A DNA stretch of 64,000 bases from Cyanophora paradoxa CCMP329 (taxonomy: Eukaryota; Plantae; Glaucophyta): the NCBI GenBank assembly GCA_004431415.1, contig QPMI01000526.1, positions 124,001 through 188,000 on the forward strand. Reading direction: 5' to 3'. Below the pieces are notes generated by a model. It was not told the origin of the DNA and ran no database searches. It saw nothing but the letters and a program-made list of their open reading frames with translations. This document shows, piece after piece, positions 1 through 62,926 of this stretch. The position numbers and the translations under genes were made by a program. Positions within the stretch are counted from its first letter, which is position 1. The number at the start of each line of letters is the position of its first letter.

Positions 1-1370
1 ACTGGCGGGGGACTGGGCGGCTATTCAAGAGAAGAAGAGGGAGGTCCAGGACCCAGCTGCAGGCTATAGGGGGAAAGCAGCTGCAGGCTCGGCGGCTCTG
101 GCCCGGCGACTGTGGGGGCGGGTACGGGGTCCTCGGAGATGGGACGAAGGGCGGCGCGTCGGGCCGCAGGCTAGGGCGGACCCGGAGCGCGCCACGTGGG
201 CAGGGGGCGGCGGGAAGCCTAGGACGGCGGATGCCGGCGCCGTGGGGAAGAGAGGGGCGTCGGCAGGGTGGACCACGGGTACGGGTACGGCCGGGCTTGG
301 AGGAGGAAGGGGCAGAACATGTACAGACGCAGCGGCGCCGGCCGCGGCTGGACGCTGCGGCAACGGCCGGTTGACGCAGTGCACGTGAGAGGGCGAGAAA
401 GTTTGCCGCGAGGCCGCCGGGCGGACCTCGACGAACCTGCGGGTGCGTCGGCGGCCCCGGTCGCGAGGCGGGGGTACGTATACCCGGTGCCGCAGGCGGG
501 CCCGCGCACTCTTCGGAGGGGCGGGGCGGATGGCCACGGCCTGTCCGCAGTCTGCCTCGCAACAAACCAACGGCGCCCGGCGGCGCGGCGTCCGGAGGCG
601 CCGCCAACTCTTCCGCTCCAGCTGCAGGCGACGGTCCTGCATCCGAATCCGCTGTCGCATGTTCAATTCGAGGCCTAAGGAAGCCGCGGCAGGCGCGCGC
701 CTCCGCCCCCGTCTTCTCCTTAAGCTTCTCCCGCGTCGCCGCCAGTGCGGCCGCCTCTTCTGCCTGTACAAGTGCGAGCCGCCGCGCCACGTGCACGTGC
801 ACCCTATATAATATCATAGTATATAGCTAGCTATAGGCCTAGGCCTGCGAAAATATTAATCCCGTCGGGCCGGCGCCGCGCGGGACGGAGCCCGGCCCGC
901 GGATCGACTCCGGGACCGGGCCGGGGCGCACTCAGCGGCGATCGCGATATATCGATTGCGAGGGAGGCGGCGGCCTCGCGGGGCGAGTTTGCGGTCCGCC
1001 TCCCGCAGGCCCGGTCTCGAACTCCCGCTCGCGGACCGGACCGGAGGCCGGCGCCGCGTGCGAGCGGGATCTGCGCGGCGCCGGCGGAAGCCTCCAAGCT
1101 TCTCAGAGGCTCGCGGAAAGCCGGACGCAACAGCCACGTTGATCAAGCTCGAGCGCTGGGTCTCCGATCGCGAGGCTCCGCCACTGTATGTGATGATCAT
1201 GATCACTGGGTCTGCGCCACTACGTGTACGTCACTCGAGAACTCCAGCTACGAGCACGAGCTTTCCAAGTTCCCAACCACGGGAAGCTCGCCTCGCGAGC
1301 CTATTTTTACCAGATCGAGCGCATCTTGCAGGCGGAGACAGCTGCAGCTGCAGGCAAGATCGAGAAGCGC

Positions 1371-1556
1371 CAAAGGAAACTTTCCTCTGACCCAGAGGAA
1401 AGTTTCCTCTGGCCCTGAACATTGTACCCCCCTCCAGAGGAAAATTTCCTCTGATCGACCCAGAGGAAAATTTCCTCAGGCCCCGGGCACTGTACCCCCC
1501 TCCAGAGGACACTTTCCTCTAGCTGTCGCGGCCGGCCCACAGGACAATTTCCTCTG
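1371..1556. repeat. Array of six ~19-bp palindromes, consensus CAGAGGAAA(A)TTTCCTCTG
   Basis: Copies start at 1371, 1393, 1435, 1461, 1503 and 1538. Short and long spacers alternate, giving a ~68-bp higher-order duplication. Confidence 0.85.
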
Positions 1557-2162
1557 CAGCTGGGCGATCCGGTTACGCTCTCTTACCGCAGTACTCGCAG
1601 CACTAGTTCGCGTGCGACGCTCTCCGCCTTCGGGAGTGCAGCTGGAGCATCGCATGCGCAGAAGCTCTAATTTTGGCCGCGTGAACGAACGTTCATGAAC
1701 GGCCTGCCGCAGTGCAGCAGCACAACAGTCGCTCGATCAATCCGCGTGGCGGCCCTCGGGACCGTCGATCGCGACTGCGCATGCGGGGCCGTTCGAATTC
1801 GCGGGGCCTCGCGGGGCCGCAGGGTCACTAACTTAGTAAGTGCCGCCAGTGCAGCCGCTGAGCGGCACTCCAGTTCGGCTCCTTCGGCCTTCGCCAAGCT
1901 TTCAGCTAACGCGGGGAGCGTCTCGGTGCGGCACAGTCCGCTTCTTCTCTCAACGCCCTCTTCTAGATCTTAAGCTTCTCATATTATTAAGCTTTTGTAG
2001 GGGGTGCACGTGCACGTGTCCGTGAGCTTACGAGCGCCCCCAGAACTCGACCTGGGCCGCGAAAAGCCCGCCCGTACGTGGAGGGAGAGGGATATGGGTG
2101 GTTTGATAGTTTGCACACGAACGCCGGGGGTACATAGAGGCGAGGGTGGCCCGCCGCCGGCG

Positions 2163-5100
2163 CTAGCGCTCGGCCACGCGCCGCGCTGCGAGTATGACCC
2201 CGGAAGGGTCCACGTACACCGGCCGCGGGTCGGCCGGGTCCCACCCCTCCGGCCGCGCGGGCATGTACCCCTCCGGGACCGGGTCCCCCGGCCCCCGCCA
2301 GCCGGGCGGGGGCGGCCCGACGAAGAGGGGGCGGGCCCCAGGGGCCGGCCCCGGCCCGGGGGCGCCGGCCGGGCGCTTGGCTGTGGACGGCGCCGGCTCG
2401 CCCGCCTTCTCCCCCCCTCCTTCGTTCTCCTCGTCCTCGTCGTCCGACTCGCGGGTGCGCTTGAGCCGCCCGCGCCGCGCGGGGGTACCGGTGGCGGCGC
2501 CGGCCGACCCCATCGCCCCCGGCCCCGCCCCCGCCCCCGCCCCCGCCCCGGCCTTCGCCTCCGGGGTACCCGCATCGCCCTCGCTCGAGCTCTCCAGGTC
2601 GACGACTTCCGGGGCCTGGCCCCCGGATCAAATTGCGAAAGTGAGAAAAGGCTTATATGAGGGACGCCCTCATTCTTGGCTTAGAAAGGAAGAAAAAGGC
2701 TTATAAGGGACGCCTTGAGCCCTCGGAGTTCTTTACTAACTTCTTACTAAGTTATTGTTTACTAAGAAATTGGGGTTTTTCTGAAGGCGCACCGCGTCCG
2801 AGGGGCGCCGGGGTACGGCGGGGGTAGAGGACGAGGGGGGGGGAGAGGACGCCGCCTCCTTCGGCGCGGACGCCGCCGCCGACACGCGCGCCGCGGCCGC
2901 CGCGGCCGCCGCCCGCGTCGACCGGCGCCGGGGCGCCGCCGCCGATCCCGGCCCTTCCTCCCCTCCGCTCCCTGTGCCCCCCTCCTTCTCCTCCCGCGGC
3001 CGCCACTCCTCCTGAGGCGTACCCCTCCCTCAGGACGACGAACAGGGGTACGAGATGAAATTCGGACGGGTACCTCGTCCTCGTCCTCTTCCTCTCTCTC
3101 GCCCCCGCCCTCCTCCTCCGAAGACGAGGAGGAGCCGACCCACTCTGCTTCGCCCTCGTCGCTGCCGGTACCCCCCGTCCTCCGAGCCTTCGAGTTCCTC
3201 TGCGCCCGGGCGCCCTTCTTGCCCCGGCCGTCGCCGCTGCCCGTCTCCTCCTCCGTGGCCGCCTCCGACCCGTCCCCCGCCTTGTCCGTCGCTGCGCCCG
3301 GCCCCGGCGTGAGTAAGTGAGTGAGCCTTCTTAGATCTCATCGGGTGTTGCAAGGGTAGAATCTTTTAAGGCGAAAAGTCTTAGAATCGCGCGCACCCTT
3401 GGAGAAGTAATCCAGGATGCCGCCCGTAGACTTCTTGGCCGCCCTGCCCTTCTCCTTCTCCTTGCCGCCCCGGGGCTTGAGCACCTGGCGCGAAGGGGTA
3501 AGACGGGAGAGCGAAGGGGGCGGGGGGCCCGGGCCCGTACACGAAAACTCTAAAAGCTTAAGCACCTGGGAGGGCATGCGCTGGCTCTCGGACTCCTCCT
3601 CCTCCGCCCCGGCGCCCTCCAGACCCCCGATCACAGGCCGCACCAGGTCCGGGTCTGAGGGGGCAGCAGACGTCAAGCGGCGGCGGGCGGGCGGCGGGCG
3701 GGCGGCGGGCGGGCGGGCGGCGGGCGGCGGGGCGAGGCTCTGGCTCTGGCTCAGGGGGGAAGAGGGGGGGGAGGAGGGGGAAGGATGGGGGGGGGGGAAG
3801 GGGGCGGGGGGAAGGGGGAAGGGGGGGCTACCGAGGTCCTTGAGGCCGCGCTGGGCGTCGACCTCGAGCGTCGTCCCCGTCGCCCCGTTCAGCGTCGTCC
3901 TGCCCGGGGGCGCTCAATGAGACGTTCAAGGAAACAAGAAGACGACAAGCCGGGCGGGAGCTTCGCCCCGCCCGGGAGGGAGCGGGGACGCGGCGTGGCG
4001 GCTTGGCGGCTTCCTTAAACCTAGATCTAGATGTAGGGTATAAATCGCGCCGATCGCGAGCTCAGAGTGAAGCTTCCTTCAACCCAGATGCTTCCTTGAA
4101 GCGCCCAGATCTAGATGTAGGGTGTAAAGTCGATGCTTGTACAGGTCGCCCCCGAGGACCTCTTAGAATGCTGGGATCCTCTAGCCTCCCGCGGCGCAAC
4201 CGATGTCTTGTTGTCTAATTGTCTAAAACGTCTAATTGTCGAACGCTGAGGCTCGATTGGATCTACTGGATTCGAAAACGAAGGGGGAAAGCTCACCCGA
4301 GGACCTCGAGCTTGCGGCGGAGGAGGGGCCACACGACGTCGTCCACCGAGCCCCGCGCCAGCAGGAAGCGAACGTTCACCTGCGCTCAGATCTGATCTGA
4401 GCCGAGACGACGGGTGGCTCCAGAGGGGTCGGATCCAAGCTCGCGCGCACGGCGCTCTTCTGGCCGATGCGGTGCGCCCGGTCCTCCGCCTGCGCGATCT
4501 CCTGCGGGGAGCGTACGTATTGGGGGGTATTTAGATCTTAGAAGATTAGGGGTGATTTAAATCGAAGGGTCGAAGATCGATGAGGAGGATAGGCTCTGCG
4601 GAGGGGAGGGCCGGAGGGCAGGGGCGGCACCCCGGGGGTCCAGCGGAGCTCGGCAAAGACGACGTTCGACGCGCTGTGCAGCGTGAGCCCTGCGGCGGGG
4701 CGGCGGCGGGGGCCTCAGCGAGGATAGACGAGCCTCGGGCAGGAGGGGGCCCCGAGCGCACCGACGCCGGCGGCGGTGATGCCAAGGATGGCGACCTTGA
4801 CCCGCGGGTCCTTCTGCGCGGCGGGGGGCCGGGGCGGATCGGAGCTCAGGCGAGCGAGCCCCCGAAGAAAAGAGGAGGCCGTACGCGTCTCAGAGAGACG
4901 CTCGGAAGGAGGTTAGGGAGGAGAGCGTTTTGCGGTTCGATCGCAAGAGACGAAAGGCTTCTAGACGACTCGGGGGCGGTCTCTAGGTGCGTTGGCGCGC
5001 CTGGAAGCGCTCGGCGAGCTCCTGGCGCTTGGCGGGCGGCGTGCTGCCGTCGATGCGGATGAACTGCGCCTTCTCCCCCTGCGCGCGCCGTGCAGGGCTC

Positions 5101-13936: not shown

Positions 13937-16900
13937 TGCTCGAGACGGAGGGCGCCGCTGGCGCGTGATGTCCCGGCGCGGCGCTGTGCGCGGGCAGGAG
14001 CCCGCCGCTGCCCCGGGCGCCGCAGCCGGCGCCGCCGCCGCCGGCGGCTCGGGCCCCGCCTCAGGGATCTCTATGGAGAGGGGGGGCCGGCCCTTGCCGT
14101 CCCGCGGCTGCGGCTCGACCGTGGACCCAGAGGAGAGCGACTCCTCCGAGGGGCCGAGGCGGCGCCGCGAGGGCCGGCGCCCAGCCACAGGCGCCCCCCC
14201 CGAAGCCGGGTCGGTCGCGGCCGAGCCGAGGGAGGCGAGGCGCGAGCGCGGGGCGGCGGGGGCCGGCGGCTCGGAGGAGAGCCGCGCCAGCCGGGGGGGT
14301 AGGGCCGCCCCCTCCCCGATCGCCAGCTGCGAACGAAGGTGAGGCGGGGGGGGGGGGGGGAGAAGCGCTTCGCTCGCACCGATTCGGAGAGGAGGGCGGG
14401 GTGGATGCCGCCGGCGCCGCCCGCGGCGCCCCCCGGGCCCCCGCGGGCCACCCCAAAGAGGCTCTTCGACCGCGGCCGCCGCGCCGCCCCCGGGCTCGCG
14501 TCCGACGACCACTGCGCCGAAAGCTGAGCCGGCGACAAGAGGAGGAGGGCGACGGGGGTGCGCACGTCCTCGCCGAGGAGGGCGGGGTGTACCCCGTCGA
14601 CGAGGGCGTCCTCGGGCGAGCCGCGGACGTGCCCACATAGGCTGCGGTGCCGGGGGCGCTCGGCGGGCGGCGGCGCCAGACCCTCCGGCTCCTGCGCGGG
14701 CGGCCTGAGAAGAAGGGAGGGGGGGGGGACCAAAGAGGGGGGTTACCGCGTCGGCGGCGGCCGAGTCGAGGGCCCCCACGAGGCGCCGGGCGACCGAGGC
14801 GACCGATTCTTCCGCACGGGAGACCCTTCGCCTGCGGCGAAAGGAGCTCGAGGCTCGAAGCGAGGGCGGGCGATAGGGAGGGGCCGAGGAAGGGTTGGAG
14901 GGGCGGACCGGGCGCGAGCGGCGGCGGCGCCGCCGACGGTCGTGAGGACGGCGCTGATGGCTCGGTGCCAGCGGTGGAGGGCGGCGCCCGCGCCGGGGGG
15001 CGCCGGGGGCGGGCCCCACGCCCGCCGCGTCGCCGCCTTCGACGCCGCTGCCTTCTGCGCGCCGGCCCCGCCGCGTCAGCGAGGATATAAGAAGCGAGCT
15101 TCGACTCGAGGCCCAGACTTCTCAAGACACTAAGAGTGCCAGAGATTGAAACTCCTCCAAAGCGCAAAAGAAGCGGGCATTGGCTTCAGGCCCAGAGAAA
15201 GCGCTGGAAGGAAAGCGGGACTCCTCCAAAGCCCAAAGAAGAATGATAGGAGGCCGAAGCTAGAGCGCGAAATGCCTAATGCCTAATGCCTAATGCCTAA
15301 TGCCTACTAGGCCAAGTGAAGCGGACCTCGAACTTAGTGCGGCGCTCAGCGAGGGCGGCCTCCTCGGCGGCGATGCGGGCACGCTCCTCGGCGGGGCGCA
15401 GCAGCAGCCGCGCCGCCCGCCGCAGCTCGTCGTCCACCCCGTCCGGCAGGTCCGCGCTGCAGGCAGGGCCGGGTCGGGTCAGATCAAATCGCAGAGGGCG
15501 GGGCAGAGATCAGAGGCAGGGCCGGGCCGGGCAGGGCTGAGGCAGGCGGATCGGTTCGGGTTCGCGCCCGGGCGGCCCGCGCGTGTGATACGATATAATA
15601 CCGTAGTACGATATGATGTGATATGATATGATATGATGTGATGTGATATGATAGGAGGGTGTGGTGCGACGCGAGATAAGCGGCGTGCGCACCAGGGCTG
15701 GATGACATAGTTCTGGCCGTCGCCGAGCAGGATGGCGGTCCGGTACTGCTCCGACTCGGCGACGAGGCAGAGGGCCTTGGCGGCCGCCCGCCGTGCCGCG
15801 GGGTCCGGATGCCGCCCGGCCGCGAATAGCAGCGGCAGCAGCGGCGCAAGCGGCTCGTGCGTCGCCGAGTCGCGGGCGAGGGCGGCCGCCATGTGGCACC
15901 CGGCGGCCGCGACGCCCAGGTCGTGCGAGCAGAGGAGCGTCTGCGTCTTGGCCACGGCCCGCGCGCGGAGGGCCCGCCCGCGAAGGGAGCGCAGGCGGAG
16001 GAGCGGGACGAGGGCGTCCGCGGCCGCCAGCTTCAGCCCGTCGTGGGGGTGGTCCAGGAGGGCGCACAGCGCCTCCACGGCCCCCGCCGCCCCCATCGCC
16101 TTGTGGCAGTCGCCTGCGCCGAAAGAGGGGCGTCGGCCGCGCGCCGAGGGGGGAGGAGGAAGGGCCCCTTAGGCGCACGGCACTTGGCGAGGTTGCCAAG
16201 GAGCCACAGGGGCTTCAGCTTGTACTCGTTCTGCTTGAACGCTGCGCACGGCCGCTAGGTTCGGAGGGGGGGGGAGAAGCCGGAGGGGGGCACGCACGGT
16301 TCCTGACGTCGTTGATGACGTCAGTGAGGATCTCGCCGCAGGCTCGGCGGCGCATCTCGTCCGCCCCCTCGCCGTCCGTCATCGACACTGGGCGGGGAGC
16401 CGAGTCAGCCGAGCTGCGGGGGGGGGAAGGAGGGGGGTACGGAGATACCGGCGATGGCGTAGCTGGCCGTCTCCTCGTCGATGTTACGGTCCACCTCGGA
16501 CGTCACGAGCGAACGAAAGTCGAGATCCATCTCCCCCCGACCCCGCGCGTCCTCTGGAGGAGAGAGGAGGAGGAGGCGACTCAGCTGAGCGGGGCGGGGC
16601 GGGCCGCCGGGCGGTCTCAGCTGGGCGTACCCCGCTTCATGAGGGTCGCGAGCAGAGAGAGGATACGGGGCCTGCGGGGCGCGCGCAGGGCGGGTAAGGT
16701 AGGCGGGCGGGCGGGCGGGCGGGCGGCGGGCGCCAGAGCGAGAAAGGGCGGGGGGGGGGAGGGGGGGGGACAGACCGTTCCCCGTCCGCTAGCTTTCGCT
16801 TCAGGTTCTCGCACAGGACGCGCACGATCCCCATCTCGACCATGATCTCAGCGAGCCGCTCTGCGGGGCGGCATCGGCGCGGCCCGCGGAGCGGCGGCGC

Positions 16901-22507: not shown

Positions 22508-24582
22508 CTAGCGCAGCTGGCCCCGGACCTGCGCCAGGATCGCGCCGAGGCAGTTCCGACCCGTCCCATCTCCGCCGTCGGCCCAGAAGCTCTCCTTCGC
22601 CGCCGCGCGGTGCACAAACGGCGCGTCGCCGGTCGCCAGCAGCTGCGAATCCGAACGCGGCCCGGGGCGTCATAATTCGCACTCTTCTTCGATGTCGAAT
22701 ATATACTATAATTGCGGCACTGCACGACTGGCACCAGTTGCGCGAGGCGGGCGCTCTGGAAGAACTTGGCGCGAACGGCGGCGGTCATGACGTCGACCAG
22801 CCGCCGTTCGCGCCAAGTTCTTCCAGAGCTTCCAGAGCGCGAACTGTAACGTGCCGGGCCAGCGGCCGAGCGCCCGCGCCGCCCCGGCCGTCGGAGCGAG
22901 GCGGATCCTCTCCGCGAGATCGAAATTGCGCGAGCGGAACTTACTTCTGCGCCTGCGCCTGCGCGCGAAAAAGTTCAATTAAAGGCGTCGACGTCGACGC
23001 CAGTGCTATTCCCTGGCTTGCGATTTGATCCGGAGCAATTACAATGCAGACGGGCGAACCTGGAAGTAGTGCTCCGTCGACTTCCAGAAGTGCCGCGGAC
23101 CCTCGCTAACTGCCCGAGTCGAGAAATCGAAGTGCGCGAGCTGGAACGGGGCTCCCTGCATGAAAATTATACAAAGGAAAATTATACAAGTATGCGGGCA
23201 TGCGCAGGCGCCTGTCAACGCTGTACCTCGTAGAAACTCGCGAGCTCGTAATATGGAGAGCGTGCCTGGTGGAACGTGATGCTGTCCACAGGCCAGTGCA
23301 TGTGCTGCCGGATATCGATCTGGGATCCGGAGGCACGGAAAATTCAAGGGAGGCGAGCTTTTATGATTTAGGAGCCGAGCCAGAGCGAACTGGCCCTGCC
23401 GCAGTGCGTACGCTTTTCAAGCTTATGCTTCGGCCGCGGTAGCGCCGATCTAGGCCTCGGGGAAAATCCTGAATGCGCCCATGGCCATGGCCAGGCGCAC
23501 CGATCGCGAGTTCGCGTCGTCCTCGCTGTGGTATACGTACGAGTCCTCCTCGCGATCGCGACCGGCGTCCTCGCTCTGATGATCACGATCACGATCACGA
23601 GTGTTTCGCAAAATTCACAATGACCGCTCAAGACGTCGACGCACCATGGCCACCACGTCTTGAGCGGCCGCGACAATGGCCTCCTCGGCGCGCCTGCGTT
23701 TCTCCGTCTCCTCGTCGAGCGCCCGCTCCGCATCCGCGAGTTTCTCGAGGGCCTCACTCGCCTCCTCCTCCGCTTTTGCCAAGCGCTCGATTATGGAGGG
23801 CACTTCGCTGGCAAGCTGCTCCGCAATTCCCGCGCGGCTCTCAGCCTCACGGATCGCGTACTCCGCCGCCGCCAGGCGCTCGCGCATCGCAGCGGTCTCC
23901 AAATCGCTCTGCGTGGGGTTTTAGGGCTTCGGCACCAATTCGTTATTATTAAAGGCAGATTATGGAGGGCACTTTGTGGGCGCGATCCTCCGCAATTCCC
24001 GCGCGGCTCTCAGCCTCACGGATCGCGTCCTCCGCCGCCGCCAGGCGCTCGCGCATCGCAGCGGTCTCCAAATCGCTCTGCGTGGGGGTTAAGGGCTTCG
24101 GCCTCAATTTCGCAAGTGAAATTCAGGAGGGCACTTTGCGGGCGAGCTCCTCCGCAATTTCCGCGCGGCTCTCAGCCCCACTGATCGCGTCCGCTGCCAC
24201 CGCCAGGCGCTCGCGCATCGCAGCCTTCTCCAGATCGCTCTACGTGCACGTGGGGATGCGATCTCGAGCTCGGATTTCGGCGCAATCGCAAGCTGGAATA
24301 TTTATGGATTCATGACTATGCGCATGCGCACCGTTCGAGCCGCGATCTCGGCCTTATCAGCGCGGCTCCTCTCTTCTTCAATCTGCTTCTCATATACCTG
24401 TCGCGCATTCGACTTTTGATCGCGGTACGTCGCGAAAACGTTTAAATTCAGTGGCGCACGGTACGAGCTTCGCGCGCCGTTGCGGCCGCCGCTGAGCCGA
24501 TCGAAGTGCTCACAGCGGCGAGCAGGATGGAGATCTCTTCGTCCGCGGGCGCTCGATGATCAAGGCTGTCGACGAGCACCAT
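22508..24582 (-). pseudogene. NADAR1: coiled-coil repeats plus NADAR (YbiA/DUF1768) domain, disrupted or degenerate
   Basis: ITFHQARSPYYELASFYE|GAPFQL..WKSTEHYFQ|AQK, IRLAPTAGAARALGR, VMTAAVRAKF and LLATGDAPFVH..SFWADGGDGTGRNCLGAILAQVR. There is an in-frame TAA at 22941-22943 and a second frameshift near 22840. The N-terminus has three repeated 35-aa coiled-coil exons. Confidence 0.75.
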
Positions 24583-24868
24583 GATAAGGAGAAGACGAAG
24601 AAGATTGAAGGAAGCCGATATCTAGAGGCCTGAGCTCGAGGGCGAAATGGAGAAACGCAAACGTATATATGGTAATGACGCACGCGCGCGGGCAAAATGT
24701 GTGTAAAGCCTGGAGAGGAAAATTCGAAGGCCTCCCTCAATTTCGCGGGCCACGCCCATGCGCATGCATATGCACGCGTACGCCTCGATCCTCACCAGCG
24801 TAATATTTCATTGCAATTGTTTGCTTCTCAGCCGACTCGCGGCGAAAGACCAGTCGTTTATTGAAATC

Positions 24869-26388
24869 ATGGCAACGTGTGCTGCTTCTGGTTGCACGCG
24901 CCCGCCTTACGCCGGCCATCCATTCTGCGGCGTGACCTGCGCCATCAAAAGCCTGAACCAGCCAGGTACAGCATAATTCCCGCAAACAGCCTGCGAATCA
25001 CCGCGGACTGCGAATTGCATGCGGCGCGGCTCATTTTCCTTCTAGTGCCGGCGGGGCTTCAGTGCTTGCTCCAGGACTGCTCCCGGCCGCTCAGCAAGCG
25101 GAGCAGCGGGCGCCTGAACGACTTTTGTTCCAAGGCCTGCTGTGCGCGCTGCTCATGACTTCGACGTTTTCTCAAGGCGCCCGGCAGCGCCTTTTTTAAA
25201 GTTTTCGACTGATCGGGGCTCTCCCTGGCGTATGCGCCGCGGCGCAGTCGATCGTTCGTTGCAGGCCTTTCCGCAGCACAAGGACGCGGCCTCCGGTGAG
25301 GGTTTAAAATTTAGCATCCCTTTGATTACTATCGAATATCGATCGCGATATCGTTCAATCGGATATCTGATCGAAAGAATTTCGAACAGGAACGCTAATC
25401 GTGGCTCTCGGTACGCAGCACCCGCTATTCGCGAGCGTCCACGCACAGGTTCGAATTCGCGAGCTCAGCGGCTGCATTGCAAATAATAATATATATATCA
25501 ATGAGAATTTGGATTCGCGCACGTACAGCTCCAGAAAACCGGCGTCGCCGCGGCGAACGTGCGCGCCGTCATGGCTGTCTTCCCCGGGCCAGCCATCGTC
25601 AACCGGCGCGCATGCAGCCCTGCAGGCTCTCGCTCACTCTCGCTCCGATTCGGCTCTCATCCCGCGGCTGCCCGCAGGTACAAGCAGCACCTCGCGCGTG
25701 TAGGCGCGACGACGGAAGAGCGCTGCTTCCACGGCTGCCGCACCGTCGCGTGCAAGATCGGCGATGGCGGCAACCTCGCGCCCTGCGCCTCCGCGGCCTG
25801 CAACCTCTGCAGGCGATTCTGCATCGCCTCTCCAATCCAGATCTAGTTATATATATATATATATAGATGTGTCCGATGACTTAATTTGCGCCGCAGCATT
25901 CTCAAGGTGGGCTTCCTTATCGAGCGCGCGAGGTCTGGGAGGGGCATCTGGTTCGCCCGCGACGCGAGCTACTCGAACAGCGGATACGCGGCTGCGACGC
26001 AGTGGGCGTCTGCCGGCGGCGCCGCCGTCAAGTATCTTTTCGTCGTAAAGGCTTGCAAATATTAATGGCCTTGGCCGCCCGCCGCGCTTTAATTTCTGTA
26101 CTACGGTATAATTAGAAGCCCGCTGTAGGATAAAGGCGAGGGAACTAGGTCCTCGCGGGTTTGGCGGGGGCACTAGGCGTGCTTCCGTTCAAGAAGCGGC
26201 GGCTTCCCCCATCCCCATATACATTAATATTACCGCCCGCCTCGCTTTAGAAGCCCCCTCATCATGACGACCGTCGGACGCGATCGATATCGCAGGTCGC
26301 CACCGGGGGCGCGACTGTCAACGGGCGCGTCGTCGTCGCGGGCGTTAACGACGCCGCCCTCCCGACCTACCTCGTCGCGTACTCGTGA
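24869..26388 (+). CDS. ART1: two zinc fingers plus PARP-like ADP-ribosyltransferase domain with non-canonical active site
   Basis: CAASGCTRPPYAGHPFCGVTC; CLLQDC..DFCSK; EERCFHGCRTVACKIGDGG..CASAACNLCSIL; GRGIWFARDASYSNSGY; YLFVVK|VATG; RVVVAGVNDAALPTYLVAYS*. Confidence 0.82.
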
Positions 26389-26869
26389 GCCTGCCGCAGT
26401 CACTGAGTGTAGTAAGATAACTGAGCGCAAGCCGCTGAGCGCTCGGCCGCATTGCTGGATATGTTCTATAATGGCAATTGAAAATCGAAAAAAGGCCAAG
26501 ACTCTGTCTACAGGCTCTTAGCAGTGCTCGGCCGCTTTTTTGGCTCAAGCTTTGGCTCAAGCTTACGAACGTGGCCATGGGCCAGGCGCCAGTGCAGCCC
26601 ATGCCACCAGCTGAATGGCAATGATGGCAATCCCATGTGCATGTGCAGCCCACTCTAGACACCAATAGGCCTTGCCCCATGCATATGGCCAATATTCTTA
26701 CACATCGAAGGATTCAATTATTTAATAAAATACAGGATTCCTAATAGCACACATTGAAGGATTCAATTATTTAATAAATTACACGGCTCCGCACGCGCGC
26801 GCCCATTCTCGCCTTGCTTCGAGGCCTCCAAGCCTAGGCCTCCTTGCAATTGCAATCGGCAGCGAGGCT

Positions 26870-28671
26870 CTACGCCTCTTTGAAAAAGACGACGGCGACG
26901 GGCAGCACCGCCTCGGCCCGATAGACCGCCCACTGCGCGCGCAAAGCTCAGGCAGGATTGAGGTTTTCGCAGGCCGGATCAGGATATTCGCAGGCTAAAT
27001 TGGACTTTTTGCAGGAAAGACTGGGCTTTTTGCAGGCAGGATTAGGCTTTTTGCAAGTCGAATTAGGCTTTTTTCGCGGGCCGGATTAGGCTTTTCGCGG
27101 GGCAGACTAGGCTTTTTGCAGGCCGGATTAAGCTTTTCGCATGCTGGGTTTGGATTTTCGCAGGCCGGATTAGAGTGTTTCGCAAGCCGGATTAGGCTTT
27201 TCGCAGGCGCGATTACGCTTTTTCGCAGGCAAGATTACGCTTGTGGCAGACAGGGTTAGGGTTTTCAAATTCGCGAGGTCTTTAAATTCGCGAGCCTCGG
27301 AGGCGCGAGCCGCTGAGCTGGGGTTCGGACTCGGGATCCAGCTCAGCGGACCTCGGGGTAGTTCAGGCGGCTCCCGTTCCCCACTTCGCCTTTGACCTGC
27401 GCAGTTGACATTGATCATGAGGGTCTTAGCTGAAATTTACTCCATGAAGCAAAGAGTGGAAGCGGGCTTGCACCGAGTGGAAGCCGGCGGGGATCTCGGC
27501 GGGCGTCATGTTGGGCCGGTCCTGGTGGAGGACCCAAGGCCGCCCGACCGCCACGCGGCACCGCACCATGCACCGCACCGTTCCTCTCACGCCCTTCATC
27601 GCCAGGGGGTAGTCGAACGCCTTCGAGGAGTGGTTGCACGTGTAGATCGCGCGGCCTGGGCTCGAAGATTTTGCTCATAATCATCTCGATATTAATATTG
27701 TATTATATATTGAAGCCGAGCACCCCATCCGTACTGCGGGTGGACGGTGGCTCGTGACAGATCAAAGCCCGTGGTGATGATGGAGCACAAAGCGCAGCCC
27801 GCCGCCGCATCGCATCTGCCGGCGAGATGATTATAAGATGGTATATACGTAGTCTGCCCCCGTGCCGCTCTCCCGCTTCGTGCGGACAATGCGAAAATGA
27901 AAATAAATCAAAGTTCGATTCGGGCTCACTGCAGCAATGCTCCCACGGAGCACTTCGTCGGGGCACCGTGCCAGAGAAGCTTCTGCACGCGCGTTAACAT
28001 ACGGAGAGTCAGAATATATATTCTTAAGCTTGATATTGTACGATCGCGAGGGGTCATAAGCGACCTGCGTCGCGTCACCGATGCCCGTCTGGTACGCTTT
28101 GTACGATTTCTTTGCTTGACCGTTGCGAATCGAGAAGCACGCGACGATCTGCACCGCCGAGAACGCTCCTTTGACCCAGTCGGACTGCATCTGCTGCAGG
28201 AGCTGTTGCGTCGTGGGCGAATCGCTCGCGAACGAGACTTGAATTGCGAGCGAAGGCGTCGCAATCGGTTGGGCTGATGAAGCGAGTCACGCGAGAAGAT
28301 TTATTTCAAACCTCAACGAAACCAAGCTTTTAATTAATAAACTAGTCGAGCGCCGAGAAATTACCTGCCAAGGCGCACGTCTTCGAGCAAAAATCGTGCG
28401 GCTTGCCGGACGAGGAGACGAAACGGACGCGCTCGCAGCCCGCACGCGAGCACTTCGAGCCCTCGGGCACCACATCTGCGAGGGGTTATAACTATCGAGG
28501 TCGTAATCGTGAGAGCGCGTGACTAAGAGCTCGCGATCAATCGAGAGAGCACGCGACGGGAGCCCGTGCACCGAGCGCGACCGCAGCGCGATTTGCGCAC
28601 GACTTGCCGCAGTACTGGTGCCCCACGAACGACGGCTTCACGCATCCAGGCGCCGCGCATGTGCCCGTCAT
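26870..28671 (-). CDS. ART2: two zinc fingers plus PARP-like ADP-ribosyltransferase with intact H-Y-E triad
   Basis: CAAPGCVKPSFVGHQYCGKSC; CSRAGC..HDFCSKTC; LLWHGAPTKC; GCALCSIITTGFD; WGRAIYTCNHSSKAFDY; CMVRCRVAVG; GFHS|VKGEVG..LNYPE|WAVYRAEAVLPVAVVFF. Confidence 0.87.
26955..27250. repeat. Degenerate ~21-bp minisatellite (TTTTCGCAGGCCGGATTAGGC) in the last intron of ART2
   Basis: About a dozen consecutive variant copies are visible. Confidence 0.85.
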
Positions 28672-29474
28672 GTCTGCAGGCACACGTTACTATTTATTTC
28701 GGTTCCCGTTTAGTCGATGCATATGTCGACGTTTTCGATCGAGAATCATCCTACAGCCAGGCCTGTTTCATGTTTTCCCCTCACATAAGTGTGCCGCAGT
28801 GCACTTCTGAGCTCGGTGCCGCGGCCTGCCTCCTCTATTTATATGTCTACAGCTCTAGATATATATGTATATATAGAGCTATGCATATTGACCGTCGGAC
28901 GTCCAAGTACTTTTGCTGGAACTGCATGCGCAGTTGTGCCCCCTCGCCTGGCCTATCTCTCCTCTCTGTTCTTCGCGATCGTTCGCTGTTCGGATTTATT
29001 TCGGTTCCCGTTTAGTCGATGCATATACATGTCGACGTCCGACGTCGACGTCCGAACTTGTTTCATTTTCCCCCCTTCCTGGCACGGTCTGCTGGCACGC
29101 ACTACTCTGTTATTTCGGTTCAGGATCATCCTGTTTCATGTTTTCCTCTCGCGTACGCGTGCCTCCCTGAATATATATCGATATCTATGGCCTATAGATC
29201 GCTGGGCGCCGGCCCTCTCTAAATGTCTAAATGGACATATGCATGCATCTATATAACGTCTGTATAACGTCCAAACTATTTTGCTGTATATAAACTATAT
29301 TAATTCTATTTTGTTTTGGTGAATTACCGGCCACAGTCTCTAGACACCAGCACTATATTAATTCTAACTTGCTCCCTGTTATATCTATATATCTCTGTTC
29401 GTTCGTCTAACTCTCCATATCTTCGCGCTGTTCGGATTCCGCGCGCGCCCCAGACCGTCGGACGCGCGCTCAGC

Positions 29475-32400
29475 ATGGCTGCGCATGCAGCGGCTCGAGC
29501 TCCGGATCCCGAAGTCGCGGTCAGCTCTTCCGGCACCGTGGCACCGCGCGCCCTCTGCTGGACGGCGCGCGCGCTCTCTCCCCAAATTAAATGGTCCGCG
29601 CGCAAACCGCAGGTTCACGTGAACGTGGCTGCCGCCACGAAATGGGGGCAGCGCATTTTCATCCACGGGCGATGCTCTGAGGCGCCCGGTAAGGATTATT
29701 TCAAGGAGATGAAGATCCAGGGAGGAGAGCACTATCCGTGAGATCTTTTGAATCAAAATTACAGCGCTCTTTTTTCTAGTGTTGATTTGTTCGGGCAGGG
29801 CGAAGAATGTCTGGTCGGTGAGCTTGAGGCTCACACCCGAGAGCCTCGGGATTGGTACTTCTAATTATCGTCACGCGCGATTCTCGTTTCGTGTGCGTAA
29901 TCGCGCGCTCCTAGCAAGTGAGCGCTCCGAGGCTCCGCGGCCCGCAACTGCATCCGCAGTTCGTCACATGCTTCGACGTCGCTCGAAGCCCACAGATCGT
30001 CCACGCGGAGCCCATCGAGGCTTTCGAATCACGCCAGCTGCCCCATGGCCACTCCCTTGGAAGCCTCGCGGGCTGTACCGTTCGCGTGGAGAGCATCTAT
30101 ATGCCGACAGGTTTGCGGCTTTAACTTTTGATTCAATTTGTGGCAAGGGAATGTGGCAATCGTAAAATCAATGCCGCAGTCGCAGAAGTGCACTCGAACA
30201 ATCCGAATTTCAAGGATCTTTTCTCCCTGGACGTCGTGTGCCTAGGCCTTTATCACTTTTCATCTGCGGTTAACCTTCGAATCCATGATCGAATCCTTCG
30301 AAACGCGACAGCCCTGCACGGTGTCCGTGCCGCAATTCTTGGCGGTGGGCCGCGAAGTGTTCGTGCACACCGGAGACTTCGATTACGCACCTCTGGACGC
30401 TTGCGCATCGGACCGTGATCAGTGCGTCTCGAGCTAGATCAGAATTCAGAATTTTTCAGCCATTCGCATACCGATGCGCAGAGCTCAAATGTGGAGAGGC
30501 ACGGTGCGAATCAACTTGGGCAATTCCAGCTCCACCCGCGACATCACGGTGAATTAAATTTTGAATATTTATTGATCATGATTCGCAATTGCTTCGCTTG
30601 CGCATAAGCATCCTCTCTGCCAGCTTTGCGCTCGGAGTCGCTCCCGACCTTTGCTTGCAGATTGCGTTGAGGGGAGCGAACGACACTCTTGTGAATATAT
30701 ATGTGCGCGGATATTGATGTTTGAGCGTCGGCCGAATATATAGTGATCCACTCTTTGCTCCCTAGGCGGACCGAAAGCTGCGCCTTGCGCACGCTCCCTC
30801 GGAATTCGGACATGTTGCAATCTGCGCATCTCTTTTTCAAGGTCGCACATGGTTTTATAATTTTGTTTGCCAATTACGAAGCTGAGACTTTCCTGGCCTG
30901 GAATATTAATGGGCAGACGCTGTCCCGGAACTCCGAATGCAGTGCGTGATTCGTACACTCGAAAGCCGAGCGAGGGCAGCAACGGAGAGGGCTCTTCAGT
31001 CGGCGTTGGCAGGCGCTCACGTTACCTGCACATGGAGCGGCTGGGAAAAGGGCAAACCCTATCAATTTCCTGGCGACCGCGAGTCGACCTCTTTCACTTC
31101 AGTCTCCGTGCGCCTCTCTAAGATGTCTGATTTTCAAAGACTGATGTCATCGTTTCATTTTCCGTGCAGGATGTGACCTTTGCTTTGCCATCGTCCACTC
31201 CGGTACGAGAGGAGCGCTTTGTCGAATTTCAGATCAACTGCCCCCGTGCTTTGGCGGGAGATCGCGTAATGTTGACCGGGTCTTGGTTGCCTAATCCTGG
31301 CATACCGCTCACACCTTCGCAGTGGTCTAGTTTTCTTGTTTCTGGCTCGCGTATATAATGGAGTTTTCGCTGAATTTTCGATGCAGGGCCCCAAACGTTT
31401 TCTCAACGAAGATACCAGTGCCAGCCGACGACAAGATGGCTCCCCCTCTGGAATACAAGGTGCTAATTGTCTATGATTTAATCTATAATTATAACAACAT
31501 TGCGCATACGTAGTACCATTTCATCGCGAGAAGTGGATTCAACCGCACAAGCATGCTAACGGGATCGGAGAAGATTTTGCGCATCCTACCTTACGGTGTG
31601 ATGGCCGTCAATGACGGTGTACTCGACGCCCGTGCGCGAATAATATGCTGATATGCCCTGTAGCATCTGCTAATATGCCATCTGCTAATATGCCCTGTAG
31701 CGGAACGGGCAGCCTCCTCACTCGATCCGGCGCTGCTTGCAATTGAGAATTCGAAGGGCAGTTGCACCGTTCACTTTGACGTCACAATGCCATATTTCAC
31801 TCACGTTCAGCCGAGAGACATTGTCTGTATCGAAAGCAATCTCTTCGACAGTAAGCTGTACGGTTATTTAGAGATGCGGCGTTCTGAATCTTCGAGAGAT
31901 CCAGACCGGCCAGCTGCAGGCTTAAGGTGACGTCGACGTGCACTTTCTAAAAACCAATGAATATTAATATATACGTGCCAATAGCATCTTGCAATTAATA
32001 TTGACTCGGATCCGGACTGGGCCGCTGCATGCGCAGCACCTACACGATTTCATTGCCTGTTCATGCCGGCGCAGCTGCTGTCATCAAGTACCAGGTGCTG
32101 ACTTATGCTTATGCACCGTGCAAAGTACGCAATCCAATGATTCAATCAATACATTAATCTCCGTGCGCAGTACGTAATTCTCAGGCGAGGCACATTGGTC
32201 TCTCAACTTCTGTGTGAGCGTGATGCAATTCGCTGCCGAGAAATTGTTGTCCCTCCAAGCGACCAATCGGTCGTCGTTCGCGACGTATATGGTCAATGTC
32301 CGACATCGCCACCTCTGAGTAAGCAATGGCCAAACTAATTATAACCGTCGCGATTAAACGCTGAGCTCTAGATCTTCGGCGCAGAGAGTGAGCGGAGCGA

Positions 32401-33286
32401 AGCTAGCGCTGCTCCCACGCACACGGCTACCTCCCAGATCAGCCGCAAGCAGGACGCGCCGTCTGCTGCTAGCGCTGGATCGAGGGGCTCAAATTCGATC
32501 GCGAAGGACTCGCGATCGGATTTGGGCGAGGCGGGGCCCGTGCATTTCTACAACCGGGGGGAGCCCTACTACGAGTTCACGAACTTCTACGAGGAGGCGC
32601 CTTTCTCCCTCGACGACAAGCGCTGGCGCACCTCCGAGCACTACTTCCAGGTTCGATCGGCTCTAAATCTTGTGGCGGACGTTAGCATGCAGATATAGCG
32701 CCACATAGCGGACGATAGTTGTTCGCTTGCATTGGTTGATTGCATCTGATGCCCGCGGCCGGTGGCGTGGCCATGGCCATGGCAGGCCCAGAAGTTCGTG
32801 AAGAAGAACCCGCGGCTCGCCGCCGCGATCCGCGACTGCTGGACTCCCCGCGAGGCTCTGGAGAAGGCGCGGCAGCCGTGGACCCAGGAGCACATGGACA
32901 AGGACTGGGATGGCCGCCGGGACGCCGTCATGCTCGCTGCTCTCCGCGCCAAGTTCCAGCAGAACGAGAGGATCCGAAAGAAGGTTTATATTTACTGAGC
33001 GGCATCGATTATATTTCGGCTCCTGCAGCTGATCATGAGCGTGACGCGCGCGCAGCTGCTGGGCACGGGCGACCGCGTGCTCGTGGAGCGCACGGCGCTG
33101 GACTCGTACTGGGGCGACGGGCCCACGGGCCTCGGCCAGAACCGCCTCGGCGTCCTCTTGATGCAGGTGCCATCGATTTTGAACTACGTATACATTCCCG
33201 AATTCCAGTCCTTTATTTGCTCGCTGAAATTCGAACAGGTTCGGGACGAGCTAAAGAAGACGTCCACTCCTTCCGGCAGCAAATAG
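29475..33286 (+). CDS. NADAR2: about four divergent CBM20-like domains fused to an intact NADAR domain
   Basis: NADAR: VHFYNRGEPYYEFTNFYEEAPFSLDDKRWRTSEHYFQ|AQKF, DWDGRRDAVMLAALRAKFQQN and LLGTGDRVLVERTALDSYWGDGPTGLGQNRLGVLLMQ|VR. CBM20-like starts: VHVNVAAATKWGQRIFIHG, TVSVPQFLAVGREVFVHTG, VEFQINCPRALAGDRVMLTGS..LEYK and TVHFDVTMP..DIVCIESN. The NADAR call is strong; the N-terminal model is moderate. Confidence 0.75.
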
Positions 33287-39950: not shown

Positions 39951-45389
<5,439 letters not shown>

Positions 45390-58700: not shown

Positions 58701-59883
58701 GATCTGCGGCGCCGCTTAGCTTAGCTCCGAATTGATCTGCGGCGCCGCCCCGCCCCGCCCAGCGCCGCCCCGCCCCGCCGCACCGAACGCTTCTTTGTAG
58801 GCCGTGAGCTGAGAGAAAAGCACGTAGAGAGGGGCCGGGAGCAGCATCGCGGTGGAGTGCGCCTTGCGCTGCTTCGTCTTGTTGTACCCCAGGTACTGCT
58901 GCAGCGGCTCGGTGCCCTTGAGCACGTCCTTCAGCTGCGACTTGAGCCCCTCGAAGAACTTCTTGCGGTCCTGGTTGGACGTCGCCATAAGCTTTTTGCG
59001 GCCCCGCAGCTCCTTCAGCTTGTCCTCTAGCCTGCGCGCCGCGCGGAGGTGAGCGGCGCGCGCCGCGGATTCGAACGCGGAGCGCCAGCGTACTCCTTGC
59101 GCTGGTGGAGCTCGTAGGCGAGGCGGGCGAGGATCAATTTGTGCTCCCGCTCGCGCTCGTCGGCGAACGCGGTTGCTCGCTGCTCCGCGGGGAGCCGCGC
59201 CAAGTCCGACTCGCTCGGCCGCTGCGGGAGCTGCAGGCCTTGCCGGAAGCTCTCCGCCGCCGGGTCCGCGAGGAACTCCGCCTCGCTGATCCAGACCTTC
59301 TCGACGCTCTCGAACTCGCGCGGCCTGCCGCCCGGTCGCCTGGCGCGTGCACGCAAGGCGGCGGCGACGAGGGGCGCACCGGTAGTCCCGGCAGCGCTGG
59401 ATCTCCTTCATGAAATGGTTCTTTTCGTACAGCAGGTTCTGTAGCTGGAGATTGCACGCGTCCAGCTCCTTCCGCCGCTCCGCGTTGTGCAGCTTGGCAG
59501 CCTCGGCGGCAAGCTGGGCTGCTCCCGCGCGGCGCGGTCAGCCCGGGCGCCCGCGGCCCGGCCATTCGAACCGCGTACGGACCGTCGCGGTTCTGCTGCT
59601 TGAGGTCCACGAACATCATCGAAATGGAGAGCATGAGCTTCTTCACGTCCTCGCTGACAGCCGCGGGCTTCTGCGGGGCGAGGACGCGATATCAATCCAA
59701 CCGCACGTGCGAATGAGTCGCCCGGATGCGTACCTCGGCCGTCCCGTCGCCGATCCGCTTCTTAGCATCCATAAGCCGGCCCAGCGCCGCGCGGATCGCG
59801 TCGCACGTAGCATGGAGCTCGACTACCGTCTCCACCTTCCTCCTCTTCCCTCCGCTGTCGATGTCCATCGCACTCGCCGACAT
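55718..59883 (-). CDS. THOC5: THO complex subunit 5
   Basis: FVDLKQQNR, LDACNLQLQNLLYEKNHFMKEIQRC, HKLILARLAYELHQRK, LLPAPLYVLF, YKPHPLSV and FEYLPKLNVVTV. Confidence 0.92.
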
Positions 59884-60813: not shown

Positions 60814-62926
60814 CTACGCCGCCACGCGGGCGCGCTTGTCGCCGCCCGCCAGAATTTCCAAGTCCCTCAGATCCCGCTCAAGCACCGCCTGCACGTACCC
60901 CCCGTCAAAGAAGAAGGGGAGGAGGGCGGGCAGGGTGGAGGGCTTCCAAGCACCATGAGCTTCTTGATGCCAGTCTGCTGTCCCTCGAGGACCTTGTAGA
61001 TGCGCTGGAGGTTCTGGTCGTCGATGGAGTCGCCTGCGCCCGAGGCGGGGCCCCCGTCCGCAAGCATATGCGCCGAGGCCGAGGACTGCAGCCGCTGTAT
61101 CCGGCCCTTGAACTCGCCCGGCTTCTCCAGCTCCTTGTGGATCTGGAGGGGTACGAGTGAGTTCTTCAGGGCCCGCGGGGGGTACGGGAAACGAGCCGGC
61201 CGGGCCGACCTGGTCGAGCTTGGACCAGAACTGCTCCTCCTCGGCGAGGAGGGGTACGCCCGCCGCCTTGACCGTCTCAACGAGCCGCATGACCTGGGGC
61301 GGGGCCGGCTCGCGCCCGGGAGTACGGAAGGCGGGCGGGGGGGTACGCGAACCGAGAGGAGCCGGTGGGCCAGGTGGGAGTGCCGGTCGCGGCACTCGGC
61401 GACGCGGGCGGCGACCTCCAGCTCCTGCTTCTGGCGCATCGCGCGGAGCTTCTCCTCCATCTCCTGCGGGGCGGCGGGTCAGCGGAACGGGAGGGAGCCG
61501 GGGGGGAAGAGGGCGGAGGAAAAGGCGGACCGTGATACGGGTACGGTGAATCGCGACCATCTTGTCCTGCTCCTGTACCCGCAGCCTTAGGTCCTGGAAG
61601 CCCGTCGCCTGCACGGGGTACAGCCTGCGAGCGGGTCCGAGTCGGCGGGGGGAAAGGCAGAGAGGTAGGCGGGGTACGGGCGCACGTGGAGGGGTCCGGG
61701 TTGTTCTTGACGGCGTGAAGCCAGAGTGACTCCTGAAAGTTCTGCGGACGCTGCGGGGTATGGTGGTAAGTCCGGGGGTACGTATGGGAGGGAGCGAGGT
61801 ACGCGGATCCGCGGACCTGCTGGTACCGGGCCGCCTCCTTCGGATCGTCCAGGACGTTGTATAGCACGGTCTGCGGCGCGGGTTCGAATCCGCGGAGGAT
61901 AGGATTTGCAGGGGTACGTACGCGGAAGCGGCAGCTGGGGTTGGCGGGGTCGGGATTGTAGGCGGCGATGAGGGATTCCCACGGGGGCGGCGGCTGCGCG
62001 GGCGCGGCGGCTGTGGGGGCGACTGTGCGGGAGTGAGGCGCGGCGGATGCGAGAGTGAGAGAGGGTTACAAGCGCACGGGAGAAGGGCTTTGCGCCTCCG
62101 AAGAGGCCGCCGGTGGTGGAGGTGGAAGGGGTAGAGAAGGAGAAAGTGGATGTGCCGGCGGCGGGCGCGCTGGTCCCGAACAGGCCGGTACCCGTCGACG
62201 ATGGCTGCGTGCTCGCACCGAACAGACCTGCGCGGGCCGCGTGAGGCGATGCGGCGCGGGCGGCTCGCCCGGCGGCGCGCACCGCCGGTTGTGGACGTGC
62301 CGGCGGCGGGCGTTGAGGAGAAGCTGAAACTGCTGGGCGCCGCCGCTGTGGAGGTGGCCGTGGTCCCGAAGTTGAATCCCGTGCTTGTCCCAGCTGCGGG
62401 CGCCGTGCCGAACGCCGAAGTTGTGCTCGCGCCGAAGGGCTGCAGGGACAGCGAGCACGGGGCGGGCGTCAGAATGAGCGGCGCGCGTGGAAACCCTGCC
62501 AGCAGGCGCTAGGATTCGCTCTCCCGCGCCGAGGCCGCACCGTGCTGGTCGCGGGGGCGCCGAATGGCGAAGCAGTCGCGCCGGTTGCCCCCGGAGTCGA
62601 CGCGGGCTGTGCGCTCGTCCCGAAGTCTGACAGGCGTGTGAGCACGGCAGGGACAAACGGGAAAGCGCTCAGCTAGAGCGGCTCAAACGATCCCGCGACG
62701 CACTGAAGCTGGAGGTAGGCGCGGGAGTCCCAAAGGCCGATGGCTGTGTCGCGGTGGTCGCACCGCCGAAGCTGAAGGATGGCGTGGAGGTTTGGGTCGT
62801 CCCGAACGCCGGCGCGGAGCTGGAGGTGCCGAACGCCGGGGCGGCTGCTGCTGGCGTTGAAGAGGACCCGAAGCTAAATGAAGGCGTCCCGCCCGCCGCG
62901 GGCGTCGTCCCGAAGCTGAACGACAT
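60814..62926 (-). CDS. NUP54: FG nucleoporin Nup54/Nup57
   Basis: FG-rich N-terminus, then YNPDPANPSCRF|TVLYNV, LWLHAVKNNPDP, GFQDLRLR and LEGQQTGIKKLM|AVLERDLRDL. Confidence 0.88.

Follow-up and report, generated by a model that had tools for sequence, protein, structure and literature searches.

Two mirror-image pairs of zinc-finger PARP-like and NADAR genes in Cyanophora paradoxa: a probable eukaryotic ADP-ribosylation writer/eraser module

Pairs of an ADP-ribosyltransferase (ART) gene and a NADAR gene are already known in bacteria. In the DarT1-NADAR system (DarTG1) an ARTD-class ART adjoins a NADAR, which reverses the guanine-N2 ADP-ribosylation written by the ART on single-stranded DNA (PMC11543638), and in the YarT-YbiA system of myxobacteria a YbiA-type NADAR stands beside an ART as its antitoxin (PMC11125620). 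The NADARs of eukaryotes are treated as orphans with no known writer (PMC11543638, PMC11125620, PMC12945103); their physiological role is stated to be unclear, and endogenous base ADP-ribosylation in eukaryotes is unreported (PMC11125620, PMC12945103). Here we analyze a stretch of 64,000 nucleotides from the glaucophyte Cyanophora paradoxa CCMP329 (contig QPMI01000526.1, positions 124,001 to 188,000), which will be referred to as the window, an intron-bearing nuclear eukaryotic segment with a GC content of 0.66-0.74. Between positions 22508 and 33286 it carries two PARP-like ART genes and two NADAR genes. Judged by sequence comparison, this locus probably holds a conserved eukaryotic ADP-ribosylation writer/eraser module of two genes, present in two mirror-image copies, with the mechanism and role proposed below.

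The arrangement resembles DarTG1 in that an ART adjoins a NADAR, but the predicted writer is a PARP catalytic-domain protein with zinc fingers and not a DarT (DUF4433 / BC4486-like). No DarT match was seen for the ARTs, whose matches were to the PARP domain and to the folds of PARP3, PARP4 and tankyrase. The genes described here are spliced, divergent eukaryotic genes 1.6-3.6 kb apart, whereas DarTG1 forms an operon, and NADAR2 carries a Glu at the position of Phytophthora NADAR E125, at which the DarT1-linked NADARs (BC4488 subfamily) have an Asp. In being of the YbiA type NADAR2 is comparable to the antitoxin of YarT-YbiA; YarT, however, is a bacterial, operon-encoded, Rhs-toxin-like ART without zinc fingers. 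The orphan NADARs of Phytophthora nicotianae (PDB 8BAU) and Amphimedon queenslandica, which remove guanine-linked ADP-ribose in vitro (PMC11543638, PMC12945103), have the same domain and the same catalytic residues as NADAR2 but were described without a linked writer, whereas here and in related loci a candidate writer lies next to the NADAR. PARP3, PARP4 and tankyrase share the H-Y-E triad with ART2, which differs from them by the absence of helical regulatory, WGR, ankyrin and SAM domains and by the presence of an additional four-cysteine knuckle behind the HG motif and of two N-terminal fingers of an uncurated type. Vertebrate DTX3L-PARP9 likewise places a PARP-family gene in a head-to-head pair with its functional partner, the two co-evolving as a unit in immunity (bioRxiv 10.64898/2026.04.23.720386); there the partner is a ubiquitin ligase and not an eraser, and the families are unrelated. 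An earlier note on this DNA had known of no description of the arrangement, and the literature examined contains no PARP-NADAR pair, although an earlier mention in comparative papers of the Aravind group is possible.

Genes of the locus

The earlier note had also proposed four spliced genes in the order NADAR1(-) ART1(+) ART2(-) NADAR2(+). All four are present, and their coordinates were fixed by exon models on both strands, built by hand from reading frames, splice sites and paralogue similarity:

22508..23301, minus strand: NADAR1, a degenerate NADAR gene (sequence read, profiles)
~23301-23227, 23155-23060, (22958 or 22939)-22735 and 22642-22508 including the stop, minus strand: NADAR1 exons (sequence read)
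24869..26388, plus strand: ART1, two N-terminal zinc fingers and a divergent PARP-like domain, coding sequence of 876 nt
24869-24965, 25046-25141, 25248-25295 and 25390-25448, plus strand: ART1 exons 1-4
25529-25812 (GC donor; a GT donor lies 33 nt further), 25897-26044, 26136-26186 (speculative) and 26296-26388, plus strand: ART1 exons 5-8
24878-24940 and 25063-25140, plus strand: zinc-finger motifs of ART1 (regular-expression scan of the six frames of the window)
26870..28671, minus strand: ART2, two N-terminal zinc fingers and a PARP-like H-Y-E domain with a four-cysteine knuckle after HG
28671-28572, 28475-28365, 28273-28065 and 27982-27930, minus strand: ART2 exons 1-4
27815-27724, 27655-27474 (preferred donor; alternative 27441), 27396-27352 and 26932-26870, minus strand: ART2 exons 5-8
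28597-28659 and 28375-28452, minus strand: zinc-finger motifs of ART2 (same scan)
32296..33286, plus strand: NADAR2, apparently an intact NADAR gene (Pfam, local profile, residues)
32296-32318 (tentative first exon), 32389-32650, 32786-32983, 33056-33166 (alternative acceptor 33029) and 33239-33286, plus strand: NADAR2 exons (sequence read)

All searches were run exon by exon, and exons were concatenated solely to count length, phase, stops and GC. The models of ART1, ART2 and NADAR2 run from ATG to stop with a length divisible by three and zero internal stops. Introns are of the GT-AG type and mostly 68-135 nt long, the exceptions being one of 419 nt in ART2 and one of the GC-AG type in ART1. 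The gene models are thus self-consistent and count in favor of a writer/eraser module.

Searches with the ART exons themselves gave nothing of use. A phmmer search of the whole protein library with a piece of ART1 exon 5 returned only two repeat proteins, both chance matches, a word-indexed search with a piece of ART2 exon 6 yielded no candidates, and scans of viral contigs found nothing, whether ART2 exon 6 or the family alignment described below served as query. Since NADAR is better conserved, it was taken as the search anchor instead, and scanning metagenomes for the NADAR exon 2 motif delivered 57 loci. One contig found in this way (L013) carries two open reading frames (ORFs) matching Pfam PARP (E 1.8e-15 and 1.8e-10), one of which is located head-to-head with a zinc-finger exon and the NADAR ORF behind it. 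As in ART2, HG is followed by a cysteine knuckle in these PARPs, and they likewise have the G-x-I-Y motif, a motif with the catalytic E as its last residue, and the C-terminal strand. An L013 PARP has 323 relatives at E <= 1e-3, and the H, Y and E as well as the four cysteines are invariant in a 60-sequence alignment of the family. The structure model of one family member reached a pLDDT >90 in the catalytic part, and its best PDB matches were PARP4, PARP3 and tankyrase, with a target TM-score of up to 0.76.

A family profile made from 120 relatives of the L013 PARP was searched against all 1702 ORFs of the window. It matched exons of ART2 and ART1, in colinear order, and nothing else better than E 5. 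In ART2 the matches covered profile positions 25-79 (exon 3), 89-100 (exon 4), 110-127 (exon 5), 140-196 (exon 6), 199-207 (exon 7) and 210-225 (exon 8). The H of the triad lies in the HG motif of exon 4, the Y in the G-x-I-Y motif of exon 6 and the E at the end of exon 7, all three aligning to invariant columns of the family alignment. Consistent with the PARP-like identity that the earlier note had assigned to ART2, exon 6 also matched the human PARP3 catalytic domain (E 0.002); against Pfam PARP (PF00644) it scored, as a single-exon query, 16.3 bits (E 0.007), the cut-off being 26.7 bits. The gene extends 440 bp beyond its expected end, to a last exon (26932-26870) past a tandem-repeat array in the last intron, and this exon, predicted beyond the repeat, was later matched by the family profile. 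By these profile matches ART2 is a member of a zinc-knuckle PARP-like family linked to NADAR, and its predicted catalytic domain looks intact.

ART1 matched the family profile more weakly, in exons 5, 6 and 8, with exon 5 covering positions 72-115, where HG and the cysteine knuckle lie, and exon 8 covering positions 202-224. The H is present, but W stands where the catalytic Y is expected, and R or V is found in the E column, so that the H-Y-E triad is incomplete. The ART1 intron 25813-25896 is probably of the GC-AG type, as with this donor the number of residues from the last cysteine pair to the GF motif equals that of ART2; the GT donor 33 nt downstream would insert 11 residues.

The two ARTs also agree in their N-terminal parts. 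Only four matches to the zinc-finger motif were found in the six frames of the whole window, all of them in ART1 and ART2, each finger lying on its own exon and the fingers of ART1 and ART2 being 45-48% identical. The zinc-finger spacing and the first intron are common to both genes, as had been observed before, and so is the second intron, both introns being in phase 1. No Pfam family matched the finger significantly; a weak match to zf-FCS (E 0.0037) was below the cut-off. The distances between the start codons had been given as ~290 and ~800 bp, but the models place them 1568 bp (NADAR1-ART1) and 3625 bp (ART2-NADAR2) apart. Further upstream ART exons that would narrow these gaps were considered and excluded, since the zinc-finger motif occurs just four times in 64 kb, twice per ART.

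Three exon pieces of NADAR2 matched Pfam NADAR (PF08719) colinearly at profile positions 2-52, 45-110 and 107-160, with single scores of 21.4, 34.3 and 36.8 bits (cut-off 35.1). A local profile built from 36 metagenomic NADARs matched the NADAR2 exons with E values of 8e-19, 2e-14 and 2e-11. NADAR2 keeps the equivalents of E43, K50, E125, D130 and W133 of Phytophthora NADAR (sequence comparison; residue list from PMC11543638), namely the Glu of the EHYFQ motif and a Lys seven residues on, the Glu of LVE, and the D..W of the next motif. E43, K50 and the E125 position matter for guanine de-ADP-ribosylation by the Phytophthora enzyme (PMC11543638). Thus, from its sequence, NADAR2 looks intact and is a predicted ADP-ribosyl N-glycosidase.

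NADAR1 shares with NADAR2 the introns after HYFQ and before LLxTGD, as the earlier note had seen. As assembled, however, it requires a change of frame between ~22860 and ~22815, where there is no space for an intron. With the first exon 3 acceptor it contains an in-frame TAA (22943-22941), the next acceptor loses the Lys equivalent to K50, and a His occupies the E125 position. Its last exon matched Pfam NADAR with E 1.5e-6, and the local NADAR profile gave a colinear but weak match at positions 2-22, 28-40, 71-103 and 101-145, with positions ~40-70 not detected. The break may be an assembly indel. On these features NADAR1 looks degenerate, lacking both an intact frame and the full set of catalytic residues. 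The expectation of two ART-NADAR pairs was therefore correct as to the presence of both pairs, but not as to two working pairs: ART1 and NADAR1 look degenerate, while pair 2 has intact residues.

Paralogue identity (ART1/ART2 and NADAR1/NADAR2) is 45-51% in the best exons, and no similarity between the two pairs was seen at the DNA level, from which the paralogues of the two pairs are judged to be old. The common intron positions and the mirror layout agree with the proposal of a duplication of the whole pair, and the two pairs go back to a single old inverted duplication.

PARP-like and NADAR genes as neighbors elsewhere

As both pairs stem from one old inverted duplication, the pairing within the window amounts to a single event. 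The repeated pairing that the earlier note had taken as its signal is consequently no independent evidence inside the window; the adjacency does, however, recur independently elsewhere. With the PARP-like family as anchor, a NADAR was located within 10 kb in 7 of 15 distinct places (L061, L063, L064, L070, L071, L072 and L073), which is a raw count over the places sampled; in one further place the NADAR lies 30 kb off on the same contig (L059 with L043). On Ephydatia muelleri chromosome CM110735.1 (L061), a NADAR on the minus strand and a PARP on the plus strand are divergent, with a reverse-transcriptase gene inserted between them. A 20-kb stretch of contig ctg21293l of ENA ERZ24894575 (L063) holds three NADAR and four Pfam-annotated PARP gene calls; three of the four PARP calls also match the local family profile with E <= 1e-4, and one head-to-head pair is 926 bp apart.

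With NADAR as anchor, PARP-family ORFs were present in five distinct contigs (L002/L003, L005, L013, L047 and L052). L002/L003 is an AT-rich contig with Asn-rich ORFs, in which a PARP gene with four fingers stands in tandem behind a finger-NADAR gene. In L005 the two genes are convergent, and in the fungus-like, intron-rich L047 and L052 they are head-to-head, which is the commonest arrangement (8 of the 12 linked places). Homologues of ART and NADAR are hence neighbors on a sponge chromosome, on long metagenome contigs and on fungus-like and amoeba-like contigs. This recurrence supports the core of the earlier proposal, a linked writer/eraser composed of a zinc-finger PARP-like ART and a NADAR in a eukaryote.

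The same type of finger as in the ARTs is fused to the N-terminus of NADAR in L014, L041, L044, L006, L013 and L020 and to its C-terminus in L033 and L047, and in L002/L003 both neighbors, NADAR and PARP, carry it. The partners in several lineages thus carry the same uncurated zinc finger. Furthermore, the three exons of NADAR2 score best against PARP-linked NADARs, which make up nine of the top ten loci, and the ART-anchored loci in this ranking were not picked by NADAR similarity.

These observations bear on the explanation that the two genes are neighbors by descent, a chance adjacency copied by segmental duplication, with NADAR2 being a YbiA-like enzyme of riboflavin damage unrelated to the ART. 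The YbiA-type Glu of NADAR2, the best PDB sequence match of its exon 3 (E. coli YbiA, E 0.0016), the long spacers and the reduction of the two pairs of the window to one event would all agree with it. However, the two families adjoin each other again, in differing arrangements, in sponge sequences and in fungus-like and AT-rich amoeba-like ones, NADAR2 groups with the PARP-linked NADARs, and the partners share a zinc finger. In addition, no riboflavin-pathway domain or gene was found in NADAR2 or in the sampled ORFs of the nearby flanks. We therefore regard descent from a chance adjacency as very unlikely. The comparative evidence supports a functional link between the PARP-like gene and NADAR.

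Several further loci were recorded during these searches. L001, a fragmentary gene call on a 4-kb JGI contig, was the only match of the NADAR2 exon 2 search. Its NADAR (L001:900-2300, minus strand), the closest relative in the first NADAR2 search, shares the intron behind HYFQ and forms a head-to-head pair with a gene composed of cysteine-rich repeat modules similar to the fingers of the ARTs; the contig stops short of any PARP part. L020 contains two convergent NADAR ORFs (2472-3086, minus strand, and 3-1631, plus strand), one with an N-terminal zinc finger. In L029 (9368-10459) a Macro domain (E 6e-36) is fused to a NADAR domain (E 3e-36), which combines two ADP-ribose erasers in one ORF.

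A scan of bacterial and archaeal genomes for the PARP-like family matched only records of metagenome-assembled genomes (MAGs) that look like mis-binned host contigs, and accordingly no prokaryotic source was found. L065-L069 (CBDBCZ010000007.1, CBDBCZ010000013.1 and OZ220037.1) bear titles of bacterial MAGs (Nitrospirales; Stappiaceae 'chromosome 86') and contain PARP-family genes of the eukaryotic type. OZ220037.1 has 211,012 bp, the same length as the ENA contig of L062. These records look like host contigs, probably of sponges, that were binned as bacteria.

Genomic setting of the locus

The locus coincides with an AT-richer island, as had been stated before, with a GC content of 0.51-0.62 at ~22-34 kb compared to 0.66-0.74 in the flanks. 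The exons of the island genes have a GC3 of 0.80-0.86, the flanking housekeeping genes one of 0.72-0.86, and the AT-richness of the island is due to introns and spacers (spacer GC 0.51-0.59). Foreign DNA was considered as an explanation of the island and ruled out by this agreement in exon GC3, which argues against a recent foreign origin. Four flank ORFs had matches:

15482-16168, minus strand: ARM/HEAT repeats
40562-41032, minus strand: helicase C-terminal domain
58719-59537, minus strand: Thoc5
60870-61478, minus strand: Nup54

As these matches show, ordinary housekeeping genes surround the island. Neither the Rfam nor the tRNA scan of the window gave a match. The remaining features of the locus are two spacers and an array:

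23302..24868, no strand: spacer of 1.6 kb between the start codons of NADAR1 and ART1, containing a 169-bp x 2.8 tandem repeat
28672..32295, no strand: spacer of 3.6 kb between the start codons of ART2 and NADAR2, GC 0.51, with no convincing coding signal
26949..27266, no strand: tandem-repeat array with periods of 21, 86 and 107 within the last intron (419 nt) of ART2

The 169-bp repeat between NADAR1 and ART1 (23789-24246, 2.8 copies, 86% match) has a period not divisible by three. On the minus strand, coiled-coil-like ORFs that end at ~23615 may represent a separate gene or an upstream part of NADAR1. The spacer between ART2 and NADAR2 includes a sub-threshold NADAR-like stretch (30419-30604, plus strand; local profile positions 108-143, E ~1), which may be the relic of a further decayed copy or due to chance. 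The degenerate array in ART2 separates the exon with the catalytic Glu from the final 20-codon exon.

This setting has to be considered together with the possibility that the pair is a selfish toxin/antidote element, in which ART2 would be a poison that kills cells or gametes lacking the linked NADAR2, so that the pair spreads, is duplicated as a unit and then decays. The tight linkage, the duplication as a unit with one copy decaying and the strong divergence of the paralogues (45-51% in the best exons) would fit such an element, as would the multi-copy alternating clusters seen elsewhere and the bacterial precedents DarT1-NADAR and YarT-YbiA (PMC11543638, PMC11125620). The codon usage, however, is host-like, the neighbors are housekeeping genes, and there is no mark of mobility at the locus. 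Moreover, conservation of the pair over distant lineages, with the finger of the partner kept, fits a long-lived host function better. A selfish toxin/antidote element is possible, with nothing that speaks for it specifically, and we consider it unlikely.

A possible mechanism and its meaning

For the writer/eraser module, the following mechanism is suggested. The writer would be a protein of ~290 residues consisting of two small zinc fingers and a PARP-type domain without the helical regulatory domain, into which a four-cysteine knuckle is inserted just after the HG motif. The eraser would be a NADAR N-glycosidase. ART2 would use NAD+ to place ADP-ribose on a target bound by its zinc fingers, and NADAR2 would remove the mark, thereby limiting or resetting the modification. 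The target is most likely a nucleic-acid base with an exocyclic amine (a guanine-N2-type linkage), which is favored because of the known chemistry of the reactions reversed by NADARs: in every subfamily tested, with one oomycete and one sponge enzyme among those assayed, NADARs remove guanine-N2 ADP-ribose, some also from cytidine (PMC11543638, PMC11125620, PMC12945103), and leave 2'-OH and G-N1 marks (PMC11543638, PMC11125620, PMC12945103, bioRxiv 10.64898/2026.03.31.715305). PARP-type enzymes can modify nucleobases (bioRxiv 10.64898/2026.03.31.715305). Adjacency would keep writer and eraser inherited, and probably expressed, together. Of the two pairs, pair 2 would be the one that works, and pair 1 a duplicate in decay or put to another use. 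The role may be one in conflict or defense against viruses or mobile DNA or RNA, with the eraser shielding the nucleic acids of the cell itself. Rapid divergence, expansion in copy number, patchy distribution and the NADAR domains in invertebrate RNA viruses (PMC9503650) would fit such a role.

Alternatively, the genes could be linked but act on something other than nucleic acids, the PARP-like enzyme modifying proteins or producing a soluble ADP-ribose derivative and NADAR clearing an N-glycosidic by-product or signal. For most PARP-domain enzymes the substrates are proteins, PARP3, PARP4 and tankyrase have the closest folds, soluble ADP-ribose derivatives have been proposed as NADAR substrates (PMC9503650), and the finger is uncharacterized, all its Pfam matches being below the cut-off. 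On the other hand, every NADAR tested acts on base-linked ADP-ribose (PMC11125620, PMC12945103), and hydrolysis of protein-linked ADP-ribose by a NADAR is not reported in the literature examined. A target of this kind seems to us improbable.

Several points weigh against the writer/eraser module. For about half of the sampled PARP-family genes, the surrounding 10 kb hold no NADAR. On most NADAR-anchored contigs no PARP is seen, many of these contigs being too short or probably prokaryotic, and several fungus-like NADAR loci are likewise without one. Most of the ART-anchored places appear to be sponge-type genomes in which both families are expanded, and hence they are not independent of each other. 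At the locus itself, spacers as long as 1.6 and 3.6 kb speak against a compact promoter used by both genes. NADAR2 carries the Glu of the YbiA type where the DarT1-linked antitoxins typically have Asp; this Glu is nevertheless compatible with ADP-ribose hydrolase activity (PMC11125620). The base marks of human PARP15 (G-N1 and U-N3) resist NADAR, and a PARP-type writer therefore need not make a NADAR-sensitive linkage. The exon-level Pfam PARP scores of ART2 and ART1 are below the cut-off, and membership was assigned with the family's own profile. The models are hand-built, matches derive from single exons, and the first exon of NADAR2 and exon 7 of ART1 are tentative. The support as a whole consists of sequence features and comparisons. 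With these points taken into account, we still consider the writer/eraser module probable.

A broader reading is offered tentatively. The zinc-finger PARP-like family could be the endogenous writer for eukaryotic NADARs, in an ancient reversible base ADP-ribosylation that is patchy in algae or protists, fungi, amoebae and sponges. It might be used in genome defense or antiviral conflict, and the NADAR domains of invertebrate RNA viruses might have evolved to reverse this activity of the host.

For the eukaryotic NADARs, the conserved neighbor encoding a predicted intact PARP-type transferase, often with the finger of its partner, represents a concrete candidate writer, and the question of the writer becomes directly testable with two small proteins. 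If true, a module of this kind would extend the ART/NADAR toxin-antitoxin logic of bacteria to eukaryotes and could explain the presence of NADAR domains in some invertebrate RNA viruses (PMC9503650).

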